In this document: positions 47,018 to 60,026 of the stretch, in pieces
How the letters are laid out: each line of letters begins with the position of its first letter
Position numbering within the stretch: position 1 is the first letter of the stretch
DNA from: Dimorphilus gyrociliatus
Lineage: Eukaryota > Animalia > Annelida
Assembly (NCBI GenBank): GCA_904063045.1
Contig: CAJFCJ010000006.1
Location: 3,798,408 to 3,862,407 of the forward strand
Direction: 5' to 3'
DNA: 64,000 bases
Notes under the pieces: model-generated
The model's input: the letters and a program-made list of their open reading frames with translations, nothing else
Database searches by the model: none
Told to the model about the DNA's origin: nothing
Program-made: the position numbers and the translations under genes

Positions 47018-48099
47018 CAGCCCCGGACAAAAATATCCATATATGGAAAAAAAGAAATTTTTTTTCAGAAACTCATTTTTCTCTAATTATGAAGAATAAA
47101 AATTTATTTTTCTTAAATAGAATTAGGTTGTTTAAAGGGTATTTTATGTAATTTAATAAAACTTTTATTTTTTTCAGCTTTTTAGAGTACCTTTTTTTTA
47201 ACTTTAGACAACAAGTATGTTTTGCAATTAAATTATATATTTTAAAAGCGGTCGTAAATATCCATACAAACATGTTTTTTGGTCAAAATTATTTTTGGAA
47301 CGTTCGAATTTAGAACAATTTTGACTTAGCAGACAATTCTTTCAACTTCTTTGTCAAAATGAAATATCAATCAAAAATGAGAGAGCTAATAAGGTTGAAA
47401 AAAACCCATATGACCTACAATGAACTTGCGGCAGAATTGAATATCCCAAGATCTTCACTCCAGTATATCTGTGAGAATAAAAGAGAAGGAAAACCTGACA
47501 GGAGGGGGAGACCACCCAAAGTGGATGACAGGATGAAGTCTCTGATCAAAAGAGAGTGCGTTAGACTACTTGAAAGAAAAGAATTGATAACTGCCAGCAA
47601 AATTAAGCATAATTTAAACCTGAAGATTTCTAAAAGAACCATCCGGAGGATCCTTAAAAAACAACAAACAGAGAATCTGTCTAATTCGAAGGTGTGCCCC
47701 CGCTCTCATCAGGAGAAAAAAGCAGACGATTAGCTATACTTGGTGGATGGGTTCAGAGTTAAATTGACTTTAACACAGTTATTATTAGCAAAGGCAATAC
47801 AATTGAGAAGTAACTCTTAAACAAGAAACATACAAACTAGTTAATTAATGTTATATGGATATTTTTGGCTACTTTTTTTCTGATTTTTTTTAATGATAAA
47901 TAAACATACAATTAAAAAACTTTTTTTTTAATATAAAAATATTTTTTTCAGCAAATCGAATCCATTTTCTGATTTATAACATATTCTTCAATGAATATTT
48001 AAAAAAAACAAACAATTTCGTTGAAGAAATCCAAAAACAAAATTATTTTATTGCAAAAATATTTTTTTTTTCATATATGGATATTTTTGTCCGGGGCCT
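47018..48099 (+). mobile_element. Internally deleted Tc1/mariner (ITm) element, 1082 bp, 28-bp TIRs, TA flanks
   Basis: Left TIR 47018-47045 CAGCCCCGGACAAAAATATCCATATATG; right TIR 48072-48099 is its reverse complement at 26/28 positions; TA at 47016-17 and 48100-01; internal HTH ORF. Confidence 0.88.
47359..47733 (+). pseudogene. Truncated Tc1-type transposase: paired HTH DNA-binding region only, no DDE/D catalytic domain
   Basis: MTYNELAAELNIPRSSLQYI (HTH1), RRGRPPKV linker, ITASKIKHNLNLKISKRTIRRILKK (HTH2); frameshifted C-terminal remnant LVDGF..TVIISKGNT at about 47740-47813. Confidence 0.8.
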
Positions 48100-48789: not shown

Positions 48790-49972
48790 CTACTCGGGTG
48801 TCAGGAAGAAAGTACTTATGAACCTGGAAAAAAGACACATTATAGATAAGATTAAATATTAAATAATCATCTTACTTATTTAGATTTTTTTCTAAAAAGT
48901 TTACTGGTAATGGGGCTAAATCATCTATCCAGTGTTTAGGAAACCTATTTAAACCGTATCTACAACCAAGTAGAGCTCCGGCAACTGCTCCATTTGTGTC
49001 AGCATCACCTCCTTCCATTATTAGATCAGTTAATGCTTTCTCTGGATCGCCTTGTTTCAATGCCCAAATTCCGGATGCCATACATTTAAACGTGTAACCA
49101 ATTTTAGCCGGTTCATCCAGCTTTAATTCCTCCAAACCATCTTTCTTAATAAAAAAGTAAGTCTTGAAGTCCGCTTTGAATTGATCCAGTTTATCGCTCT
49201 TCAAGTCAGCAGTGTACTCTTCATTTTCAAATATGTATTTACAAGTAAATTCATAGGTTTCATTTAATATCTCTTCAATATCGTTATCAGAAAATTCAGT
49301 CTGGTTCTTGTTTTCAATTCTCTGAAGCATTTTAGCAATTATAATAGTAACTGCTACACATGAAGCTGAACATCTAGGATCATAATGAGTAACTCTGCAA
49401 ACTTTTACTGTGTTCTCTGCAACTTTATTTAAATCTTGAAATTCATAAATTCCGAGAATTGAAGTTCGCATCACACCGCCATTTGGTGCTGCATTTTGAT
49501 TTGAGTCAATCCAAACTCTCTTTGCGCTTTCCTCTGGTTTCGTAAGATAGTCTTTTTCTGATAAAACTAGATAAGTTGTTCTTCCCAATCCTAGACCACC
49601 TGTATCCTTTAGCTGTGGAAATCCTTCATTCGACCAGTCATAGAACGCCTCAGCAATATCGGTTACAACAAGATTTTTTTTCTGAGCCAAGGATCTCATA
49701 ATACAAATCATTTGATCAGAATCATCAGTCCAATCACCGATAACCCATCGACCCCTATGTCTATCTTTCACTTTGTGAGAGTACTTCAAACCACTTGCTC
49801 TATGCTCTCCATACACTTTCTCAATATTGGGTTTGTGCATAAATTCTGTGAGTAATCCCAAAGCATCTCCGATACAATTGCCGTAGACAATAGATCTAAT
49901 TCTCTCTTCCGTGACCTGAGATATATTATACTTTCTTGGACCGCCAGAAAAGACACCTTTTAAGCATGTCAT
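48790..49972 (-). CDS. ADP-ribosylglycohydrolase (ARH/DraG family), single domain (copy A)
   Basis: YGNCIGDALG, GDWTDDSDQM, NAAPNGGVMR, THYDPRC, EGGDADTNGAVAGALLG; ATG at 49972 (the ORF-track start is TTG); short last exon 48790-48823. Confidence 0.9.
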
Positions 49973-50459
49973 TGTGAATAATCTAACAAGAGGCTTCCTG
50001 TTTGCATGCAATTTCGTAATGGCTGCACATATTTAATGGATATCGCAAAAATAAATTAAATTCGCTAGGAAAAGAGCGGGAGATATGAAATTTTTGCATA
50101 CTAATATACAAGTTATGAGACAAAAAACTATACCCATGTATGGATCAATTTGCATATTTAAAAATATACATAGTTTCCGACACTAAATAGATATCTAGTT
50201 TATTTTAAATCGATTTCTAAAATTTTGATACAGGTTTTGATAACTTTTCAACCCTTAAACTAAAAGTTTAATCTATAAATAAGGCTTCAATAAAATTCAT
50301 CAGCAGTAATTTTAGATTAGAATTTCAACATTAAAATTAAATTGCAATTTGCAACGTTAGTTGTAGTTTGAACTAGTCCCATCAGAGGGCAGTCTCTCTT
50401 TTGGTACTAGCGTTCATTCTGCTGTACTGGTGTATTTTCTAAAGTTTATAAATTAATTG

Positions 50460-51974
50460 ATGCCAATGTATGAAGGATTCGGATACGGAGGTGAAAAAGA
50501 AGCCATCGTTCTTGATATTGGCGCTGCTTATACAAAGTTAGTATATTTTTCTTCTATTATTCTCCCATTTTCGTTCTGATCCTTTTTTCCGTAGAATTGG
50601 TTTTGCAAACGACTGCTCTCCAAGGTCGATAGTTCCAACCGAAATTTATGATAAGCAAACAAAAACTAAACTTCGAATTTTTGATATTAAAAACAATGAA
50701 ACTTTGAAAGCAAGTCTTCTTGTTTTCCTGAAAAAAATTTACTTGAGACACCTGCAAGTTAATGCTAAAGATAGAAGAGCAGTTATTGTTGAAAATATCA
50801 TCGGACCTATTGATTTTCGAAAGCTTATAGCAGATGTTCTCTTCAAACATTTTGAAGTACCAAGTTTACTTTTCGCACCAAGTCATTTAATTAGTTTGAT
50901 GCCATTAGGCATATCAACTGGGTTAGTTTTGGATTGCGGATATAAAGAAACAATAGTAATTCCGGTAAGTAAGATCCTTCCTCAAATATGTTCAATTTAT
51001 ATAGCATAGGTTTTATTTTAGGTTTGTGATAATACCCCTGTCTTAAAGGCATGGCAAGCATTACCAGTTGGAGGGAAAGCTATACACAAGTATTACTCTT
51101 TAACGACTTCTTTTAGTGTTTATTTAATAACTTTCTTCATATTTCAAAATCAAATAGCCGAATCAGAGAAATGATCAAAGAGTTTGCCATTGTACGAGAG
51201 GGAAATAATGAAATGCCTGCTTCAAATCTACCTTCTGATGTTCTAACTGAAGAAATATTAGAGGATATTAAAGGTAATTTAAAAATTGGAAGTTCTCTTA
51301 TTAATTTAATTGGAAAATAAATCTAATCCTAAAATAGTGCGATGCTGCTTTATTACACGTCTGGATAGAGTAAATGATCCTGATATTGAGCATCCCTCAG
51401 AGACTATTTATCCGTTACAAGGTTCAAGAATTTTGGTTATTCCAGGAAAGATTAGGTTAGAACATTCAAATCAATAATCTCTTATGCCAATCCGAGCAAT
51501 ATTTCTATAGAGAAATGGCCTGTGAAGTACTCTTTCAGTTGGATGGGGAGGAGAAAAATATAGCTTCCCTACTTCTTGAAGCTTTAACGCTTTCCTCAAT
51601 TGATAATCGACGCAATTTAATGGAAAATATTGTTCTGGTTGGAGGGACTTGTCAATTAACTGGATTTAGGCAAAGACTTATGGCTGAACTGAAGAATTTA
51701 GCATCAACAAATAACAAGTATACAGACTCGATTCATTTATCCTCCTTTAAGTTTCATACAGCTCCTATTTATGAAAATTGCACGGCGTGGTTGGGAGGTT
51801 TGTAATTAATACATATTAAATAGCATTTAATTCAAATTTCGTCAATTGATTTTAACTTTAGGTGCTATGTTTGCTGGCCTACAAGTTTTACCTAATCGAT
51901 CAACAGCAAGAGAAAAGTACTTAGAAAACGAAGTTTTAATGGATTGGTCCGATCCCAAGACATATGAAAATTAA
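50460..51974 (+). CDS. ACTR10: Actin-related protein 10 (dynactin Arp11), multi-exon
   Basis: [72 protein letters not shown]. Confidence 0.95.
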
Positions 51975-52214
51975 CTGCTTTTTTTAGTATATTTTTTCTT
52001 TTTGATTATTTTGCTTTTCACCTATTTATCGTTCGGGGACGAACTTTTCTTTTTTTTTTGAGGCTTTCCTCATTTGTCAAAGAGGCAAATAGATGGCTTT
52101 GTCTAGTGAATTTTTGGATAATTAGTCTTTACAATTTAAGTAACCAACTACCAATACATTGGGAATTTGAAAACTTAGTTACGTATATCTAGTCCAAAAG
52201 TAGATGAAGTTTAT

Positions 52215-52942
52215 TCAATTCAAGAATCTAATACTCATCAGGTGTTCAAAATCAAGGTGCTCAGTGATCTGTTTTCAATTTTCAAAAGTAAAATTAGAAT
52301 CTATTTATTAATAGTGAATATTACAGCACCTTCTTAAAATCCTCGTATCCTATATCACCATCTTTATCTATATCTGATGCTTCCATAGTTTTATCAACAA
52401 TATCAGCCAATCTTTTATCCGATATATTCGATCCAACCATCATTTGCAGTACGGTCATTAATTCTTCTTTATGAATTTTCTTATCGTTGTCGATATCATA
52501 TAAATTGAAAATTAATTTTAGTTTGTCTTCTCTCTTACTTGGATGTGGAAGAAAAGTTGCCAGAATTCTTGTGAACGTCTTAAAGTTGACAGCTTTCGGG
52601 TTAGCAGTAAAAAATGCCTAATTTTGTTTATTAATTTTATTAATATTTAATAATTTGCTTAAATCAGAAGGGAAATTATAATTTCGAATTTTTGATATAA
52701 AAAACAATGAAACTTTGAAAGCAGAGGAAAATTATAACCTGTGTTATCCTATCAGCTAGTGGATTAATAGCCAACTCGGGAATTGTTAAGAAATCTTCTT
52801 TATTCAAAAAACCCTTACTTCCCTTATCTAATCGAGTAAATCTACTATATAGTCTAATTATTTGATTATAACTGAATCCAGTCTCTTTCTTTATCTCCTC
52901 CAATTCGGATTCGTGCAAAAGAACTGAACAATTTGAACCCAT
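52215..52942 (-). CDS. CHP1: Calcineurin B homologous protein (EF-hand), 3 exons
   Basis: Myristoylation-type MGSNCS; ETGFSYNQIIRLYSRFTRLDK, IPELAINPLADRI, YDIDNDKKI, MMVGSNISD, DIDKDGDI; ends MSIRFLN*. Confidence 0.93.
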
Positions 52943-53410
52943 CGCTTCTTTTCAGTAAGCTTAAATTTTTCACTATGACATGATAATACAAATCTTATCA
53001 CTGATATGGAATGTATACTAATGGAAACTTCTGCTAGAAGTATAGATATCGTTCAAAAATAAGCTTAATCGTTATCTAATCATATTTAAGGAGCATAATC
53101 ACTGAGTTACTTGTTCTTCTCTTATGTTGGGCAACTAGCAAACGCTTTATAAAAGATGATGTTTCCATTTCTCTTTTAAGCTATACTTAATAAATACCAT
53201 GTAGAAAGCATTGAGCAATGTCAGTTGTAGCTTTTATAGATCAGTATCACATATCAGGCTGGTGTTTAAAAGTAATTTTACTAGGCTTAGGTAAATTTGT
53301 CCACGTTATTAGGATTTATGTTAAATATGAGATTTATTTTAAATTATTGATTATTAGACATCAAATTAAATAAAGGTAAATATTTCTAGATTTAATGATA
53401 TACTCAGAAA

Positions 53411-54514
53411 ATGGAGGATGAAATGGCAACAATTTACGGTTTAGAATATCAATGTAGATGTTTAACTCCTCAATTAGGAGAAACAGATTTGGTTAACTTT
53501 ATGGCGGGAACTCAAAATTTAAAAAGAGAAAATCAAGTGTATCTAATCAATTACGATGACATTAATAATATCTTAACAACAAAATCATATCCTCATAAAT
53601 TAGGGGAAATTTGGCATATTGCTGCGTGCAGTTGGGATAAAACTTTGTTTTCAACAGTATTTAGTAAAACTCAAAAAGGAAAGAAAAAGGTTAATGCTGT
53701 TTTATGGAAACTTCCTAACGAGGAAAGCAATCATAATTCTCTGATACAACTATCAGATTTAAATACTTCAGAATATGGAGATGCTTGTCAAGTAATGTTC
53801 AGTCCAGATTCGTATGATAACGAAGTTATTACTTTGGTGGATAGTCGGATTCTGTATTGGGATATCGGATCGGCTGAGTCGAGAATCAAGAGTAGTATAA
53901 GTATTGATCAAAAACTTCAAAAAACTATAACTAGCGGCAAGTGGTGCCCTCATCAAAATCACGCTCAGGTGTGTACTGCGTCTGAAACAAGTCTAAAAGG
54001 TTGGGACCTACGTACGAAAATGTCTTGTTTTACAATAGAAAATGCGCACGAACATCACGTAAGAGATTTGGACTATAATCCAAACAAACAGTATTATCTA
54101 GCATCATCTGGTGATGACTGTAAAGTAAAATTTTGGGATATTCGCAACACGAAGAAAGAAGTTAAAGTTCTATCGGATCATTCTCATTGGGTATGGTCTG
54201 TCAGATTTAATCATTTGCACGATCAATTTATCCTCTCAGCGTCATCTGATAGCCGTGTTATATTATCAAATACCATGTCTATATCAAGTGAAGCTTTTGG
54301 TGCTCTCATAGAAGAAAAAGAATATAATCCAACACACCACGACGGTGTCATCAAGATTTTTGATGAACACGAAGAGAGTGTTTATGCAGCCGAATGGTCA
54401 TCAGCGGTCTCGTGTATTTTTGCATCAATTAGTTATGACGGTCGGGTTGTTATCAATCGAATACCTAGATCAGAGAGATTTAAAGTCTACTTTGAAGATT
54501 TGATAGAAGATTAA
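53411..54514 (+). CDS. EIPR1: EARP/GARP-interacting WD40 protein (TSSC1), intronless
   Basis: MEDEMATIYGLEYQCRCL, WD40 repeats, HSHWVWSVRFNHLHDQFILSASSD, EHEESVYAAEWS. Confidence 0.94.
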   Translation: MEDEMATIYGLEYQCRCLTPQLGETDLVNFMAGTQNLKRENQVYLINYDDINNILTTKSYPHKLGEIWHIAACSWDKTLFSTVFSKTQKGKKKVNAVLWKLPNEESNHNSLIQLSDLNTSEYGDACQVMFSPDSYDNEVITLVDSRILYWDIGSAESRIKSSISIDQKLQKTITSGKWCPHQNHAQVCTASETSLKGWDLRTKMSCFTIENAHEHHVRDLDYNPNKQYYLASSGDDCKVKFWDIRNTKKEVKVLSDHSHWVWSVRFNHLHDQFILSASSDSRVILSNTMSISSEAFGALIEEKEYNPTHHDGVIKIFDEHEESVYAAEWSSAVSCIFASISYDGRVVINRIPRSERFKVYFEDLIED

Positions 54515-54616
54515 CTAAAACAGGCATCTTTATATATTAAATGCAATATAAAAGAATAAGCCTATAAACAAAAACAAAATTGTAATTTCGTATCAGGATT
54601 CGAAAATAAAAGCATT

Positions 54617-57356
54617 TCAATTGTCTAATTCGTTATGTAATCTTCGTAATTTTTCTTTTTTCTTTTTATTTCCATGCTTTTTCCATGGTTTATCATTAAT
54701 GCCCGAAGCCATGCTGCTATTTACGGATGATGCTCCTCTAGAATGATGTTGCGAGTAGCCATCTCTTCTAGTATAATTAATTACTCCTTTGACACCTTTA
54801 GACCCTACTCGGCTCTCCTTCTGCAAATGAACATCATAGTAAAATAATATTAATAGGTATATATATAAAATGTTGATTTAGCATGATATTTATCGTTAAA
54901 TAGAACACTGAAATATATATCATTACCTTATCGAAAAAATCAGAATCGATATTTGACGGTTTGCCTCCTAATATTTTCTATGAAAAAAACAGAACAAAAT
55001 ATTACCAAATGCATGAAAATGTTAGTTAAATAAATATTTACTTGAGTTGCGCGAACTGCTTTAATAGTTTGATCGGTTTTCTTGAAACAGGTTGAAAGAT
55101 CGTATGTATTAAAATCTGTTACTAGAATTCCTGGTGGTGGATAGCAGTGTAGTAACTTTCCCTAGAATGTTTTTCAGTTGTTCATTATCAAATATTTTGC
55201 TATTTTTTTAATATTTTTCTTACATTTACATAATCCTTTAAGATTAACCTGGATGATCTTGGCATATCTGGTATTCCTTTATGGGACATAAAACCCCTCA
55301 TATCTGTGTACAATATCTATTTTAGTAAACTAATTTTGTAACAATATAAACAAAAGAATACGTACATCCATATGCAGTAAGTAGTTCTACAGCAGTTGGC
55401 CGACGGTTTGGATCATCACCTTCACCAGGCTTTGGAAGGATAATACCGTAGGTATTTTCCAAGACTTCTCTAGGAATGTGCTGGCAAAGCTATCAACACA
55501 AAAGATATTAGACAAGTTTGTTGCTTAAAAATTTTGACTTACTAATGAAACTGGGGCTAGATAATCTCTCATTTGATCAATCGGAAGTATGCCACAAATT
55601 ACCATTTCAGCTTTAGTGCTAACAAAACTAGGTGTCACTAAACCGGGACAATCACAAAGCAGAATATCTTCCTCAAGATATAAAGTCTATAAAAGGTGGT
55701 TAAATATAACTTTTTATTAAAATATCCCGTTTTGACTAACTTGAAAATGTTTTGTTCGTCCAGGCGTAGACGATACAGGTACTTTCTTTGTTTTCATTAA
55801 GGCATTTATAGTTGAACTTTTCCCCACGTTTGGATATCCCACCTGAAATTATATAAACAATTTACAAACCTAAGAGAAGTTTTCGAGATATTCATCAACT
55901 TACCAATCCAATAGTGGTTACTCCCTCTTTTATTTTATCCCCAGAATGTATATCTCGTAATTTATCGACTAACTGATCGCCATTTAGAATATCCCAATCG
56001 TTAATTTCAACAGTGACATCATCTGCTCTATCAACAATCTTTTCTTCAATCCGTGGCGGTTCTTGAACACAATCATCCTCCTGTTTTTCTCTTACATCTG
56101 TATTGTCATCTTCCTCACTCTCTTCACTGTCGTTCTCATCATCATCATCAACCTCGTCTTCATTGTTTTCATGTTCCTCATTTTCAGAAGCGTCTTCTTT
56201 TGCCTAAAAAAATAAAGATATCGATATATCTATGTTAAAATATGTTTAATAGAAACATTATTACATTTGCTTTCAATCTCTCCTCCTCTAGACTAGCAGA
56301 CCAAAATAGTACATATTCCATTTTATCCTTCAAATATTCGACCCATTTTTTTCTATAAAGAATATTAAGAATGCAGAAATGTTAAAACAGGGAAAACAAA
56401 TGACTTAACCTACCTTTGATTCTCGTTTAATAGATCAGCTTTATTTATGAGCATAACGTTAATTTTATTCTCGGATACTTCCTTAACATATTTACTAAGA
56501 TCGTCACTCCAAAATAGCAAGGGATTTCTCGCATCAACAATTTGTACAACCACATCACTGAAATATGATTAAAAAATATTCTTTAATTGGTGAATTTAGG
56601 AAACTTTATAGCAAAAATACAACCTTCTTTCAATTACTCTCCACAATTGACGCCAAAATTCCAAATTCCTTTCAAAAGGTGTAAGAAGAACGTGCTCTTT
56701 TTCCTCAAGTCTAATATAATTAAGCTTCAATATAAAAATATAGAAGTGTTTTATATACATACTGTGCTAGTTGCTGCCTCCATTCAAGAAATGCATCTTT
56801 CTCATTTCTATCTAACTCTTCACTTGTCGTATGTTCATTCCATTTCGGTCTGAATTCAATATATATGTTAGAAACATAAGTAACTTGAGCTAAGATATAC
56901 ACCTTCTTGGAATTTTGAGAAAAGTTTTATTTTCTTTCTGAGCATCATCTACCTTTTCTTGCTCTTCTTCAGTTAATAAACCAACATTTAAGTCCGGATG
57001 AACGAATTTAATATTAAGTTTTTCTGAAAAAAAACAGAAGTTGTCTGTATTAAATAATATTATTACATAACTACGCAATACCTGCTGTAAATTCTGTGCC
57101 TGCTAGTTCGGCAGTGGCTAGAAATTCTTCTAGATTACTTTGTTCAGTAACAGACTGCAAATTTAATCTTCCCCAATCATATCCATCATTCAACTCGCTA
57201 GTGTGAAGCTTGATAGCATATATGAATTACGATTAGAAGAATTCAAACGAAAATTGGACCACTTACAAAAGATTGGTTTGACCTCTTATTTTTACTAAAT
57301 CGATCCTTAATCATAGCTTTCCCCAAACCATTTGGAGCATTCTTCTTCTTTCCCAT
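54617..57356 (-). CDS. LSG1: Large subunit GTPase 1 (circularly permuted GTPase), multi-exon
   Basis: [70 protein letters not shown]; ends [24 protein letters not shown]. Confidence 0.95.
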
Positions 57357-57693
57357 TACTCAACAAGTTTTTATTTCCTCAATTTTTTCAATTAAAAAAA
57401 AACCTCGTTTCTTACTTACAGCTAGAGGGTATAACTAACATAACGTATAAGTGATCATTATTTTAGTGATACCCTCCTTTGTTGAAAACTTTGAAAAAGA
57501 TAGAAAAAGACTTATAAAATCACTATGAATTAATTTATTTTCAAAGCATCATACTACACATTAAATAAATGAACAGTAAATCTCTCTACTACAAGATATT
57601 ATTGTAAATATAATTAAAAAATCCAAATTATTCATCATTATTCGAAGGGAAAATTCAATTTCCTGCATATAATGTATGTATAAGCTTTAATCC

Positions 57694-60026
57694 TTAAACG
57701 GCAATGGTGAAAATAGAAGCAAGAAATCTGAAAAAATTTAAATTGTAGAAAATATCTAATAAAAATATAAGCATACATGTTTAGATTTTTCTCCAAGAAA
57801 TTCACTGGCCCACGAGCTAGTTCGCTTATCCAGTGTTTAGGAAACCTATTTAAACCGTATCTACAACCAAGTAGAGCTCCGGCAACTGCTCCATTTGTGT
57901 CAGCATCACCTCCTTCCATTATTAGATCAGTTAATGCTTTCTCTGGATCGCCTTGTTTCAATGCCCAAATTCCGGATGCCATACATTTAAACGTGTAACC
58001 AATTTTAGCCGGTTCATCCAGCTTTAATTCCTCCAAACCATCTTTCTTAATAAAAAAGTAAGTCTTGAAGTCCGCTTTGAATTGATCCAGTTTATCGCTC
58101 TTCAAGTCAGCAGTGTACTCTTCATTTTCAAATATGTATTTACAAGTAAATTCATAGGTTTCATTTAATATCTCTTCAATATCGTTATCAGAAAATTCAG
58201 TCTGGTTCTTGTTTTCAATTCTCTGAAGCATTTTAGCAATTATAATAGTAACTGCTACACATGAAGCTGAACATCTAGGATCATAATGAGTAACTCTGCA
58301 AACTTTTACTGTGTTCTCTGCAACTTTATTTAAATCTTGAAATTCATAAATTCCGAGAATTGAAGTTCGCATCACACCGCCATTTGGTGCTGCATTTTGA
58401 TTTGAGTTAATCCAAACTCTCTTTGCGCTTTCACTTGGTTCCGTAAGAAAATATTTATCGTACAGTACATCTAAAGTTGTTTTTCCCAGTCCTAAACCAC
58501 AATTATCACTGAGCTCTGGAAATCCTCGTCTAGACCAATTAAAAATTCTTTTAGCAATATCAGTTTCAGAAATCCGTTTATTTTCTGATAAAGATTGCAT
58601 AATGCAAATCATTTGATCGGAATCGTCTGTCCAGTCGCCTTGATCCCATCTACGTCTATGTTTATCTGGAATTTTGTGTTTATAACGAAGACCCTCTTTG
58701 AGGTACTTTAAATAGTAGAAATGACATTCTTTTTTATTCAGAAATTCTGTAAGTAAACCTAAAGCATCTCCAATACAGTTACCATAGACAATTGCAGTTA
58801 TTCTGTCTGTTGTTTTCGGATAGAGTGAAACCTTAGTGCTTTCAAGTATTTGCCTTTCTTCCTTCACATTGCACTTGTAAAAGCATGTATTTAAGAACCT
58901 AAGGAAGGGGAAGTAATAGATAATATAAAAAATGTTTATGTGCATACTTCTTTATATTTGCTTTTAAGAATTCGTTTGGCGCGGAGGCTAATTCGGTATT
59001 CCAATAAGAAGGAAACCTATTTAAACCGTATCTACAACCAAGTAGAGCTCCGGCAACTGCTCCATTTGTGTCAGCATCACCTCCTTCCATTATTAGATCA
59101 GTTAATGCTTTCTCTGGATCATCTTGTTTCAATGCCCAAATTCCGGATGCCATACATTTAAATGTGTAACCAATTGATTCGCATTCATCCAGATGCAGTT
59201 GTGATAGACCATATTTTTCAATAAAAAAGTACTTTTGGAATTCTTGTCTGAATTGATTCAATTTTGTTGAACTTATCTCAGTTATATACTCTTTGTTACG
59301 AAATACAAAAGTATCCGTAAATTCATAGGTTTCATTTAATATCTCTTCAATATCGTTATCAGAAAATTCAGTCTGGTTCTTGTTTTCAATTCTCTGAAGC
59401 ATTTTAGCAATTATAATAGTAACTGCTACACATGAAGCTGAACATCTAGGATCATAATGAGTAACTCTGCAAACTTTTACTGTGTTCTCTGCAACTTTAT
59501 ATAAATCTTGAAATTCATAAATTCCGAGAATTGAAGTTCGCATTACACCGCCATTTGGTGCTGCATTTTGATTTAAGTTAATCCAAACTCTCTTTGCGCT
59601 TTCCTCTGGTTTCGTAAGATAGTCTGTTTCTAATAAAACTAGATAAGTTGTTCTTCCCAATCCTAGACCACCTGTATCCTTTAGCTGTGGAAATCCTTGT
59701 CTAGACCAATTAAAAATTTTTTTAGCAATATCAGTTTCAGAAATCATATTGTTTTGCGATAAAGATTGCATAATGCAAATCATTTGATCAGAATCGTCTG
59801 TCCAGTCGCCTTCATCCCATCTACGTCTATGTTTATCTGGAATTTTGTGTTTATAACGAAGACCCTCTTTGAGGTACTTTAAATAGTAGAAATGACATTC
59901 TTTTTTATTCAGAAATTCTGTAAGTAAACCTAAAGCATCTCCAATACAGTTACCATAGACAATTGAAATTATTCGGTCTTTTGTTTTCGAAGAAATCGAA
60001 AGAGTTTTCGTTTTAATATCATTCAT
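57694..60026 (-). CDS. Tandem two-domain ADP-ribosylglycohydrolase (ARH-ARH, ~744 aa): copy C (58948-60026) spliced in frame to copy B (57777-58898), plus a short last exon (57694-57727)
   Basis: Both domains carry GDALG, WTDDSD and GDADTNGAVAGAL. A 49-nt phase-2 intron at 58899-58947 (GTATGC..CCTTAG) gives ..ANIKK|FLNTCFYKC..; a second 49-nt intron lies at 57728-57776. Confidence 0.82.

Follow-up and report, generated by a model that had tools for sequence, protein, structure and literature searches.

Interlocus gene conversion and concerted evolution are well known in small families of linked genes, such as the primate gamma-globins, the red/green opsins, RHD/RHCE, and Drosophila Hsp70. Programmed diversifying conversion, as in the chicken immunoglobulin V pseudogenes, Trypanosoma VSG, Borrelia vlsE, and Neisseria pilE/pilS, uses one expression site, many silent donors, and one-way transfer, and non-synonymous variation is strongly raised. 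A further point of reference is Tri1, an immunity protein of the ADP-ribosyl hydrolase (ARH) family, in which an N-terminal extension blocks the toxin independently of catalysis. Here I describe a window of 64,000 nucleotides from contig C6 of G000, the published assembly of the 77.9-Mb genome of the annelid Dimorphilus gyrociliatus, in which three ARH domains (A, B, and C), all on the minus strand and within 11 kb, form a mosaic of identical and diverged segments. It is very likely that non-allelic (ectopic) gene conversion among three old paralogous ARH domains made this mosaic. No literature was found on gene conversion in the ARH family, and a search of the ARH, Tri1, and invertebrate literature likewise gave nothing pertinent.

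Mosaic pattern of the three ARH domains

A first-pass annotation of the window had claimed that A, B, and C swap their nearest neighbours along their length. The mosaic was measured on a MAFFT alignment and a codon alignment with 1031 aligned coding positions, and all coordinates of the three tracts of identity or near-identity were reproduced. A 48926-49506 and B 57827-58407 have 0 mismatches in 581 positions, while C differs at 72 of them. A 49509-49626 and C 59581-59698 have two mismatches in 118 positions, while B (58410-58527) differs at 29. B 58644-58794 and C 59815-59965 have 0 mismatches in 151 positions, and here A differs at 57. The diverged block of C's own, which had been placed at about 59165-59320, was found at 59172-59318, and the variable peptides quoted from the copies (EFMHKPNIEK/EFLNKKECHF, FPQLKDTGG/FPELSDNCG, and CKYIFENEEY/DTFVFRNKEY) are present.

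As listed in Table 1, the alignment falls into five segments and a tail. There are 233 variable sites, at which B equals C (99 sites), A equals C (38), A equals B (83), or all three differ (13). These site patterns form 49 runs, as compared with 155 on average and 126 at the least after shuffling, and none of 100,000 shuffles gave a number as low. The longest concordant run was exceeded in none of 20,000 permutations for each pair, and the synonymous differences of neighbouring segments differ with Fisher p values from 1e-8 to 1e-23. The switch from the B=C pattern of segment 1 to the A=C pattern of segment 2 takes place between the adjacent bases 49627 and 49626.

The synonymous divergence (dS) is 1.5-1.9 in the diverged blocks, saturated or near 1 in the tail, and only 0-0.085 in the shared tracts. 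In segment 1, dS is 0.085 for B and C, while it is about 1.5 for A-B and A-C, with a ratio of non-synonymous to synonymous divergence (dN/dS) of 0.24. In segment 2, dS is 0 for A and C, while that of B against A or C is 0.41-0.49. In segment 4, where conservation across the family is lowest and which is partly a lineage-specific insertion, C against A or B has a dS of 1.85 and a dN/dS of 0.24. The 581-bp tract of A and B has no difference over about 118 synonymous sites. A micro-patch of 12 nucleotides was also seen in segment 1 (B 58575-58586, C 59746-59757, A 49674-49685), where all three copies differ (SENKRI/SQNNMI/AQKKNL); either a short event of its own or clustered mutations could account for it.

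Table 1. Window coordinates of the ARH gene models and of the segments of the mosaic
Feature	Position	Strand	Detail
Gene A, DgyrCDS5169 (P0001, 376 aa), single ARH domain	48790-49972	-	Spliced translation identical to P0001; PF03747 E 3.4e-60
Gene A, exon	48876-49972	-	
Gene A, intron	48824-48875	-	52 nt, GT..AG
Gene A, terminal exon	48790-48823	-	34 nt
ARH domain C, exon 1 of DgyrCDS5173	58948-60026	-	PF03747 E 1.7e-56; spliced model identical to P0121
Intron linking domain C in frame with domain B	58899-58947	-	49 nt, GT..AG; joint 58896->58946 (cut +2) in X2 and X4 contigs
ARH domain B, exon 2 of DgyrCDS5173	57777-58898	-	PF03747 E 1.8e-58
3' end of DgyrCDS5173	57694-57776	-	49-nt intron 57728-57776 and 34-nt last exon 57694-57727; joint 57727->57777 in X2 and X4 contigs
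Segment 1	A 49627-49906; B 58528-58807; C 59699-59978	-	B near C, A diverged; 151-bp exact core
Segment 2	A 49509-49626; B 58410-58527; C 59581-59698	-	A near C, B diverged
Segment 3	A 49245-49506	-	All three near-identical
Segment 4	A 49100-49244; C 59172-59318	-	A = B, C diverged (its own old version)
Segment 5	A 48938-49099	-	All three near-identical
Tail	Final 21 codons	-	All three differ

Is the mosaic a true feature of the genome? The assembly was made from PacBio reads with PBcR, followed by Quiver consensus, Pilon polishing with 101-bp reads, and a HaploMerger2 merge (PMC7854359). An artefact, in which assembly collapse, Pilon, or HaploMerger homogenised paralogues that truly differ, is conceivable for an assembly that was polished with such short reads and haplotype-merged, as short reads have no unique placement inside tracts of 150-581 bp. 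The independent data were short-read contigs from four runs (X1-X4), of which X1 is DNA-like and X2 is a 2017 run of another study. In the contigs of the two studies, each copy-specific block is present with 0 differences, and the contig ends, which overlap by k-1, coincide exactly with the boundaries of the mosaic. The C-specific contig of segment 4 was found in both X1 and X2 with 0 differences, and the same blocks are also free of differences in X2. The X1 depths per contig are 263 for a flank found in B only, 608 for segment 4 shared by A and B, 981 for a block common to all three, and 382 for segment 4 of C only. These depths, in a ratio of about 1:2:3, fit one, two, and three assembled copies, and there are no alternative letters in the A=B tract. 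Moreover, divergence rises from 0% to about 30-40% within one base at the boundaries, which polishing cannot create; the PacBio reads are far longer than the tracts (581 bp), and the annotated proteins agree exactly with the window. An artefact of this kind is thus highly improbable. In the interval 59549-59698, the contigs are bubble-popped blends of A and C, with two other letters in X1-X3 and four in X4, so that the few A/C single-base differences in segment 2 are unconfirmable from contigs.

Age of the copies and the origin of the mosaic

A comparison of just three sequences can assign each site pattern only to a change on one branch, so clustering by itself is no proof of recombination. 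The contrast in age and the outgroup provide the proof. In principle, the clustering in three sequences alone could be copy-specific local acceleration: a very recent triplication after which, block by block, a single copy diverged in a local burst by hypermutation or positive selection. However, the diverged blocks are saturated at synonymous sites and have a dN/dS of 0.24, and everything around the shared tracts is unalignable or saturated. The homologous terminal introns of A, B, and C have no similarity above that of shuffled sequence, the N-termini and flanks do not align, and the C-terminal 21 codons have no similarity above shuffles.

The outgroup is a distant relative seen in Logan assemblies (L004 and L008), whose EIPR1 is only 74% identical to that of Dimorphilus in amino acids. 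It has one ARH gene beside Arp (P0002, hereafter oA) and one between NDUFB5 and EIPR1 (P0003, oBC), the latter being a single ARH at the position of the Dimorphilus C-B tandem. The gene order RPL5-COP9-PPID-ARH-Arp ... EIPR1-(three small genes)-ARH-NDUFB5-CLIC (window 41582-63998) is fully kept in the relative, and the proteins of the syntenic block are 64-92% identical between the two species. Since orthologues occupy both loci and the dS between oA and oBC is saturated in every segment, the A locus and the B/C locus predate the species split. In the whole-protein tree, A, B, and C nevertheless group together within the five-sequence clade (support 100), while in the protein tree of segment 1, A pairs with oA (support 88) and B with C (support 87). 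Such within-species clustering despite old orthologous loci is the signature of concerted evolution. A very recent triplication is extremely improbable in the face of orthologues at both loci of so distant a species and of the pairing of A with its orthologue in segment 1. The 3.4-kb gap between PPID and gene A contains a 124-aa open reading frame (47359-47733, plus strand) with helix-turn-helix domains of the Tc3/mariner transposase type (HTH_28, HTH_32, and HTH_Tnp_Tc3_2); the corresponding gap is about 2.2 kb in the relative (L004).

Because the copies are old and each locus has its orthologue in the relative, the near-identical tracts are attributed to non-allelic gene conversion. The B-C likeness in segment 1 is likewise attributed to conversion and not to a recent tandem duplication, since the tail of B and C (dS of about 1.2) and their introns are old. 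Thus, the segmental gene conversion proposed in the first-pass annotation is borne out by the old duplicates, the sharp tract bounds, the identity at synonymous sites, and the conserved synteny with orthologues. Tracts of 0.1-0.6 kb between copies in the same orientation and spaced by 1.2-8.9 kb are typical of ectopic conversion.

Two other causes were considered and rejected. Constraint does not explain the identity, since the homogenised segment 3 (conservation 0.60 among 118 family members) is no more conserved than the unconverted segments 1 (0.63) and 2 (0.59). Unequal crossover as the sole cause was ruled out for two reasons: in both B and C, shared blocks are flanked on each side by private ones, and exchange of this kind between A and B would leave the intervening genes deleted or duplicated.

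The mosaic, its significance, and the contrast in age are shown directly by the data, as are the gene models and transcription, and from these I infer the recombination mechanism as well as the number, order, and direction of the events. A break in one copy would have been repaired from a paralogous template without crossover, and at least four tracts of about 120-580 bp and of differing ages would have been laid over the old background. One event may have joined B with C in segment 1, where 13 differences remain in 291 positions (about 4.5%) around a 151-bp exact core. Another may have joined A with C in segments 2-3 (about eight differences in 380 positions; about 1-2%), and a further one C with A and B in segment 5 (three differences in 162 positions; about 2%). 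The fourth and probably youngest event would be that of A with B in segments 3-5, with 0 differences in 581 positions; its dS is below about 0.025, given the absence of differences over the synonymous sites of this tract. The direction of the fourth event was possibly from A to B, although this is weakly supported. In the trees of segment 4, A and B fall with oA (support 44) and C with oBC (support 31), both weakly; in segment 3, all three copies are slightly nearer to oA than to oBC (85 vs. 104 nucleotide differences). Together, they hint that A donated.

Several points weigh against the conversion scenario or parts of it. The protein-level tests of tree conflict with the outgroup are weak, with an approximately unbiased (AU) test p of 0.056 for rejecting A+B+C in segment 1 and of 0.14 for rejecting A+oA in segments 3+5. 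The direction of donation rests on segment-4 supports of 31-44. The GC content at third codon positions (GC3) is not raised in the converted tracts, so that there is no signature of GC-biased conversion. The short-read contigs stop at each shared tract and none spans a whole copy; thus, the evidence for how blocks are linked within a copy is the published PacBio assembly. Pilon with 101-bp reads could also have erased a few true differences between A and B within the 581-bp tract.

Gene models, catalytic domains, and the defence-repertoire question

The homology searches were made with single exon open reading frames, and the C-B join was checked by a script for frame and identity to the annotated protein. 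The copy limits quoted in the first-pass annotation turned out to be those of annotated exons. The spliced translation of C and B is identical to DgyrCDS5173 (P0121, 744 aa), which has two PF03747 stretches. Both introns of DgyrCDS5173 are spliced out in contigs from the RNA-like runs X2 and X4, and A-specific sequence was found in RNA-like runs as loose ends of contigs overhanging B and C. The RNA-like runs thus contain sequence specific to each of the copies, and all three domains appear to be transcribed. A 388-nt contig of X3 (58587-58974) crosses the C-B intron unspliced, while X2 and X4 show splicing. Should X3 be an RNA run, there would be an isoform that keeps this intron, in which domain C terminates at its own stop codon (58899) as a single-domain protein; alternatively, X3 may be a library of the DNA type.

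All three domains match PF03747 (ADP_ribosyl_GH) end to end, from profile position 2/3 to 286/287 of 287, with E values of 1e-56 to 1e-60 and 192-205 bits (cut-off 26.2). The motifs GDALG, TDD, and DxDT had been described as invariant, and IGDALGLLTE, WTDDSDQ, and GGDADTNG are indeed identical in A, B, and C. Across 60 homologues, these motifs vary little or not at all, and they align to the corresponding motifs of MJ1187; I take their residues to be metal ligands, following the assignments in published structures of ARH3 and DraG. Every catalytic motif is intact, and so the three proteins most likely function as di-metal ADP-ribosyl hydrolases. The AlphaFold2 (AF2) model of domain C is all helical, with a predicted local distance difference test score (pLDDT) of 95.6 and a predicted template modelling score (pTM) of 0.94. 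Its best Foldseek matches are MJ1187, DraG, Tri1, Lmo0067, the Thermus (Tth) ARH, and ARH3, with a probability of 1.00 and template modelling (TM) scores of 0.6-0.8. Since the sequence matches rank in the same order as the structural ones, the subfamily is of the DraG/Tri1/MJ1187 type and is not specifically Tri1-like. It occurs in molluscs, annelids, nemerteans, brachiopods, cnidarians, hemichordates, echinoderms, and amphioxus (41-50% identity), and its members in the D. gyrociliatus genome are these three domains only. Two more intron-interrupted PF03747 loci (G000:C3:2432822-2433956 and G000:C2:1972050-1972772), the only other ARH-family genes found in the genome, are presumably of the ARH1/ARH3 type.

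Does the mosaic serve defence? The first-pass annotation had suggested a recombining anti-ADP-ribosylation defence repertoire, in which conversion shuffles specificity blocks on a constant catalytic scaffold against diverse bacterial ADP-ribosylating toxins. This reading is compatible with conversion as its mechanism. If true, Dimorphilus would have a limited, combinatorial range of ARH specificities for reversing ADP-ribosylation by toxins, with two of them carried by a single protein; this would be an animal counterpart of bacterial ADP-ribosyltransferase/ARH immunity. In its favour, each domain is a unique combination of two-state blocks, and the subfamily is tandemly expanded in several marine invertebrates. 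In addition, the dN/dS of B is raised to 0.55-0.69 in segment 2 (38 codons, low power), which surrounds the Gly-rich loop, where confidence in the model is lowest. However, the genome has three domains of this kind and no silent donor cassettes, and dN/dS is below 1 everywhere; the value of 0.24 in the two large variable blocks (segments 1 and 4) means purifying selection. The residues that vary among the copies lie at family-variable positions (mean conservation 0.27-0.45), and those invariant among the copies lie at family-conserved positions (0.61-0.81); the family-conserved positions are untouched.

The surroundings of the domains also speak against a repertoire. The neighbours are housekeeping genes that are kept in the relative (PPID, Arp, a CHP-like EF-hand gene, EIPR1, NDUFB5, and CLIC), and there is no ADP-ribosyltransferase, toxin, or immune gene among them. 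The relative has a single, unconverted copy at each locus, and the fold and sequence are no nearer to Tri1 than to DraG, MJ1187, or ARH3. A search of the genome for vertebrate-type ecto-ADP-ribosyltransferases (PF01129) was blank, but its control was blank too, so that it is uninformative. In a set of three copies, conversion erases about as much diversity as it recombines. A selected repertoire is therefore very unlikely, and the suggestion was not upheld for three domains that are all apparently expressed and have no toxin gene nearby. It is very unlikely that selection keeps the patchwork by recombining blocks for substrate or target recognition, namely segment 2 at the Gly-rich loop and segment 4 with its helical insertion, while the catalytic core stays fixed.

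Comparison with known systems

Gene conversion at this locus adds a clean new case to a well-known process, in genes that are annotated but have not been characterised. In this animal with its miniature genome, it is a compact and unusually legible instance of concerted evolution, with breakpoints resolved to the base and a syntenic outgroup by which the age of the duplicates is set. It could serve as a worked example of the effects of tract length and distance, including those on exchange between domains of a single polypeptide and a gene 9 kb away. A further consequence is that trees of this invertebrate ARH family will mislead on orthology. The mosaic by itself reveals no new defence system.

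Proteins with two PF03747 domains and about 720-750 aa are also found in Sinanodonta (ACJMK2_041378), Potamilus (CHS0354_038752), and Saccoglossus (LOC100373659). These three proteins (P0122, P0123, and P0124, respectively) have 724-746 aa and halves that are about 51% identical, and their N-terminal domain is of a different type, 36-39% identical to the Dimorphilus domains. In contrast, the two halves of the Dimorphilus protein share 79% identity, and each is similar to the C-terminal type. Thus, the Dimorphilus fusion is independent and homogenised, and the comparison of sequences suggests that the bivalve and Saccoglossus proteins represent an older di-domain architecture separate from it. 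Sinanodonta and Potamilus have large tandem arrays of this ARH subfamily.

The Dimorphilus domains share the ARH fold and the metal-binding motifs with Tri1, the type VI secretion system (T6SS) immunity ARH of Serratia proteamaculans (PDB 6DRE/6DRH), and with Lmo0067 (8ZA7). The Foldseek E value is about 1e-8 with TM scores of 0.61-0.65, and the phmmer E values are 1e-12 and 2e-11. However, MJ1187 and DraG match the Dimorphilus domains as well or better, and no ADP-ribosyltransferase gene adjoins the Dimorphilus loci. The long N-terminal extension is also absent: the match starts at residue 66 of Tri1 and at residue 13 of the query, and the Dimorphilus domains have about 12-30 residues ahead of the ARH core, which are not conserved. 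Moreover, the Dimorphilus family is eukaryotic and spread across marine invertebrates.

As in programmed diversifying conversion, segmental copying has given mosaic coding regions. Unlike those systems, Dimorphilus has three domains that all appear to be expressed and no silent cassettes; its tracts occur in every pairing, and dN/dS stays below 1. The closer likeness is to the families with interlocus conversion: the paralogues are linked, in the same orientation, and old, and the tracts are a few hundred bases long, sharply bounded, identical at synonymous sites, and confined to coding sequence. Furthermore, the paralogues cluster within the species despite their orthologous positions in another species. 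Dimorphilus differs from these families in that the exchange takes place between a separate gene 8.9 kb away and two domains of one polypeptide, and in that tracts are found in all three pairings.

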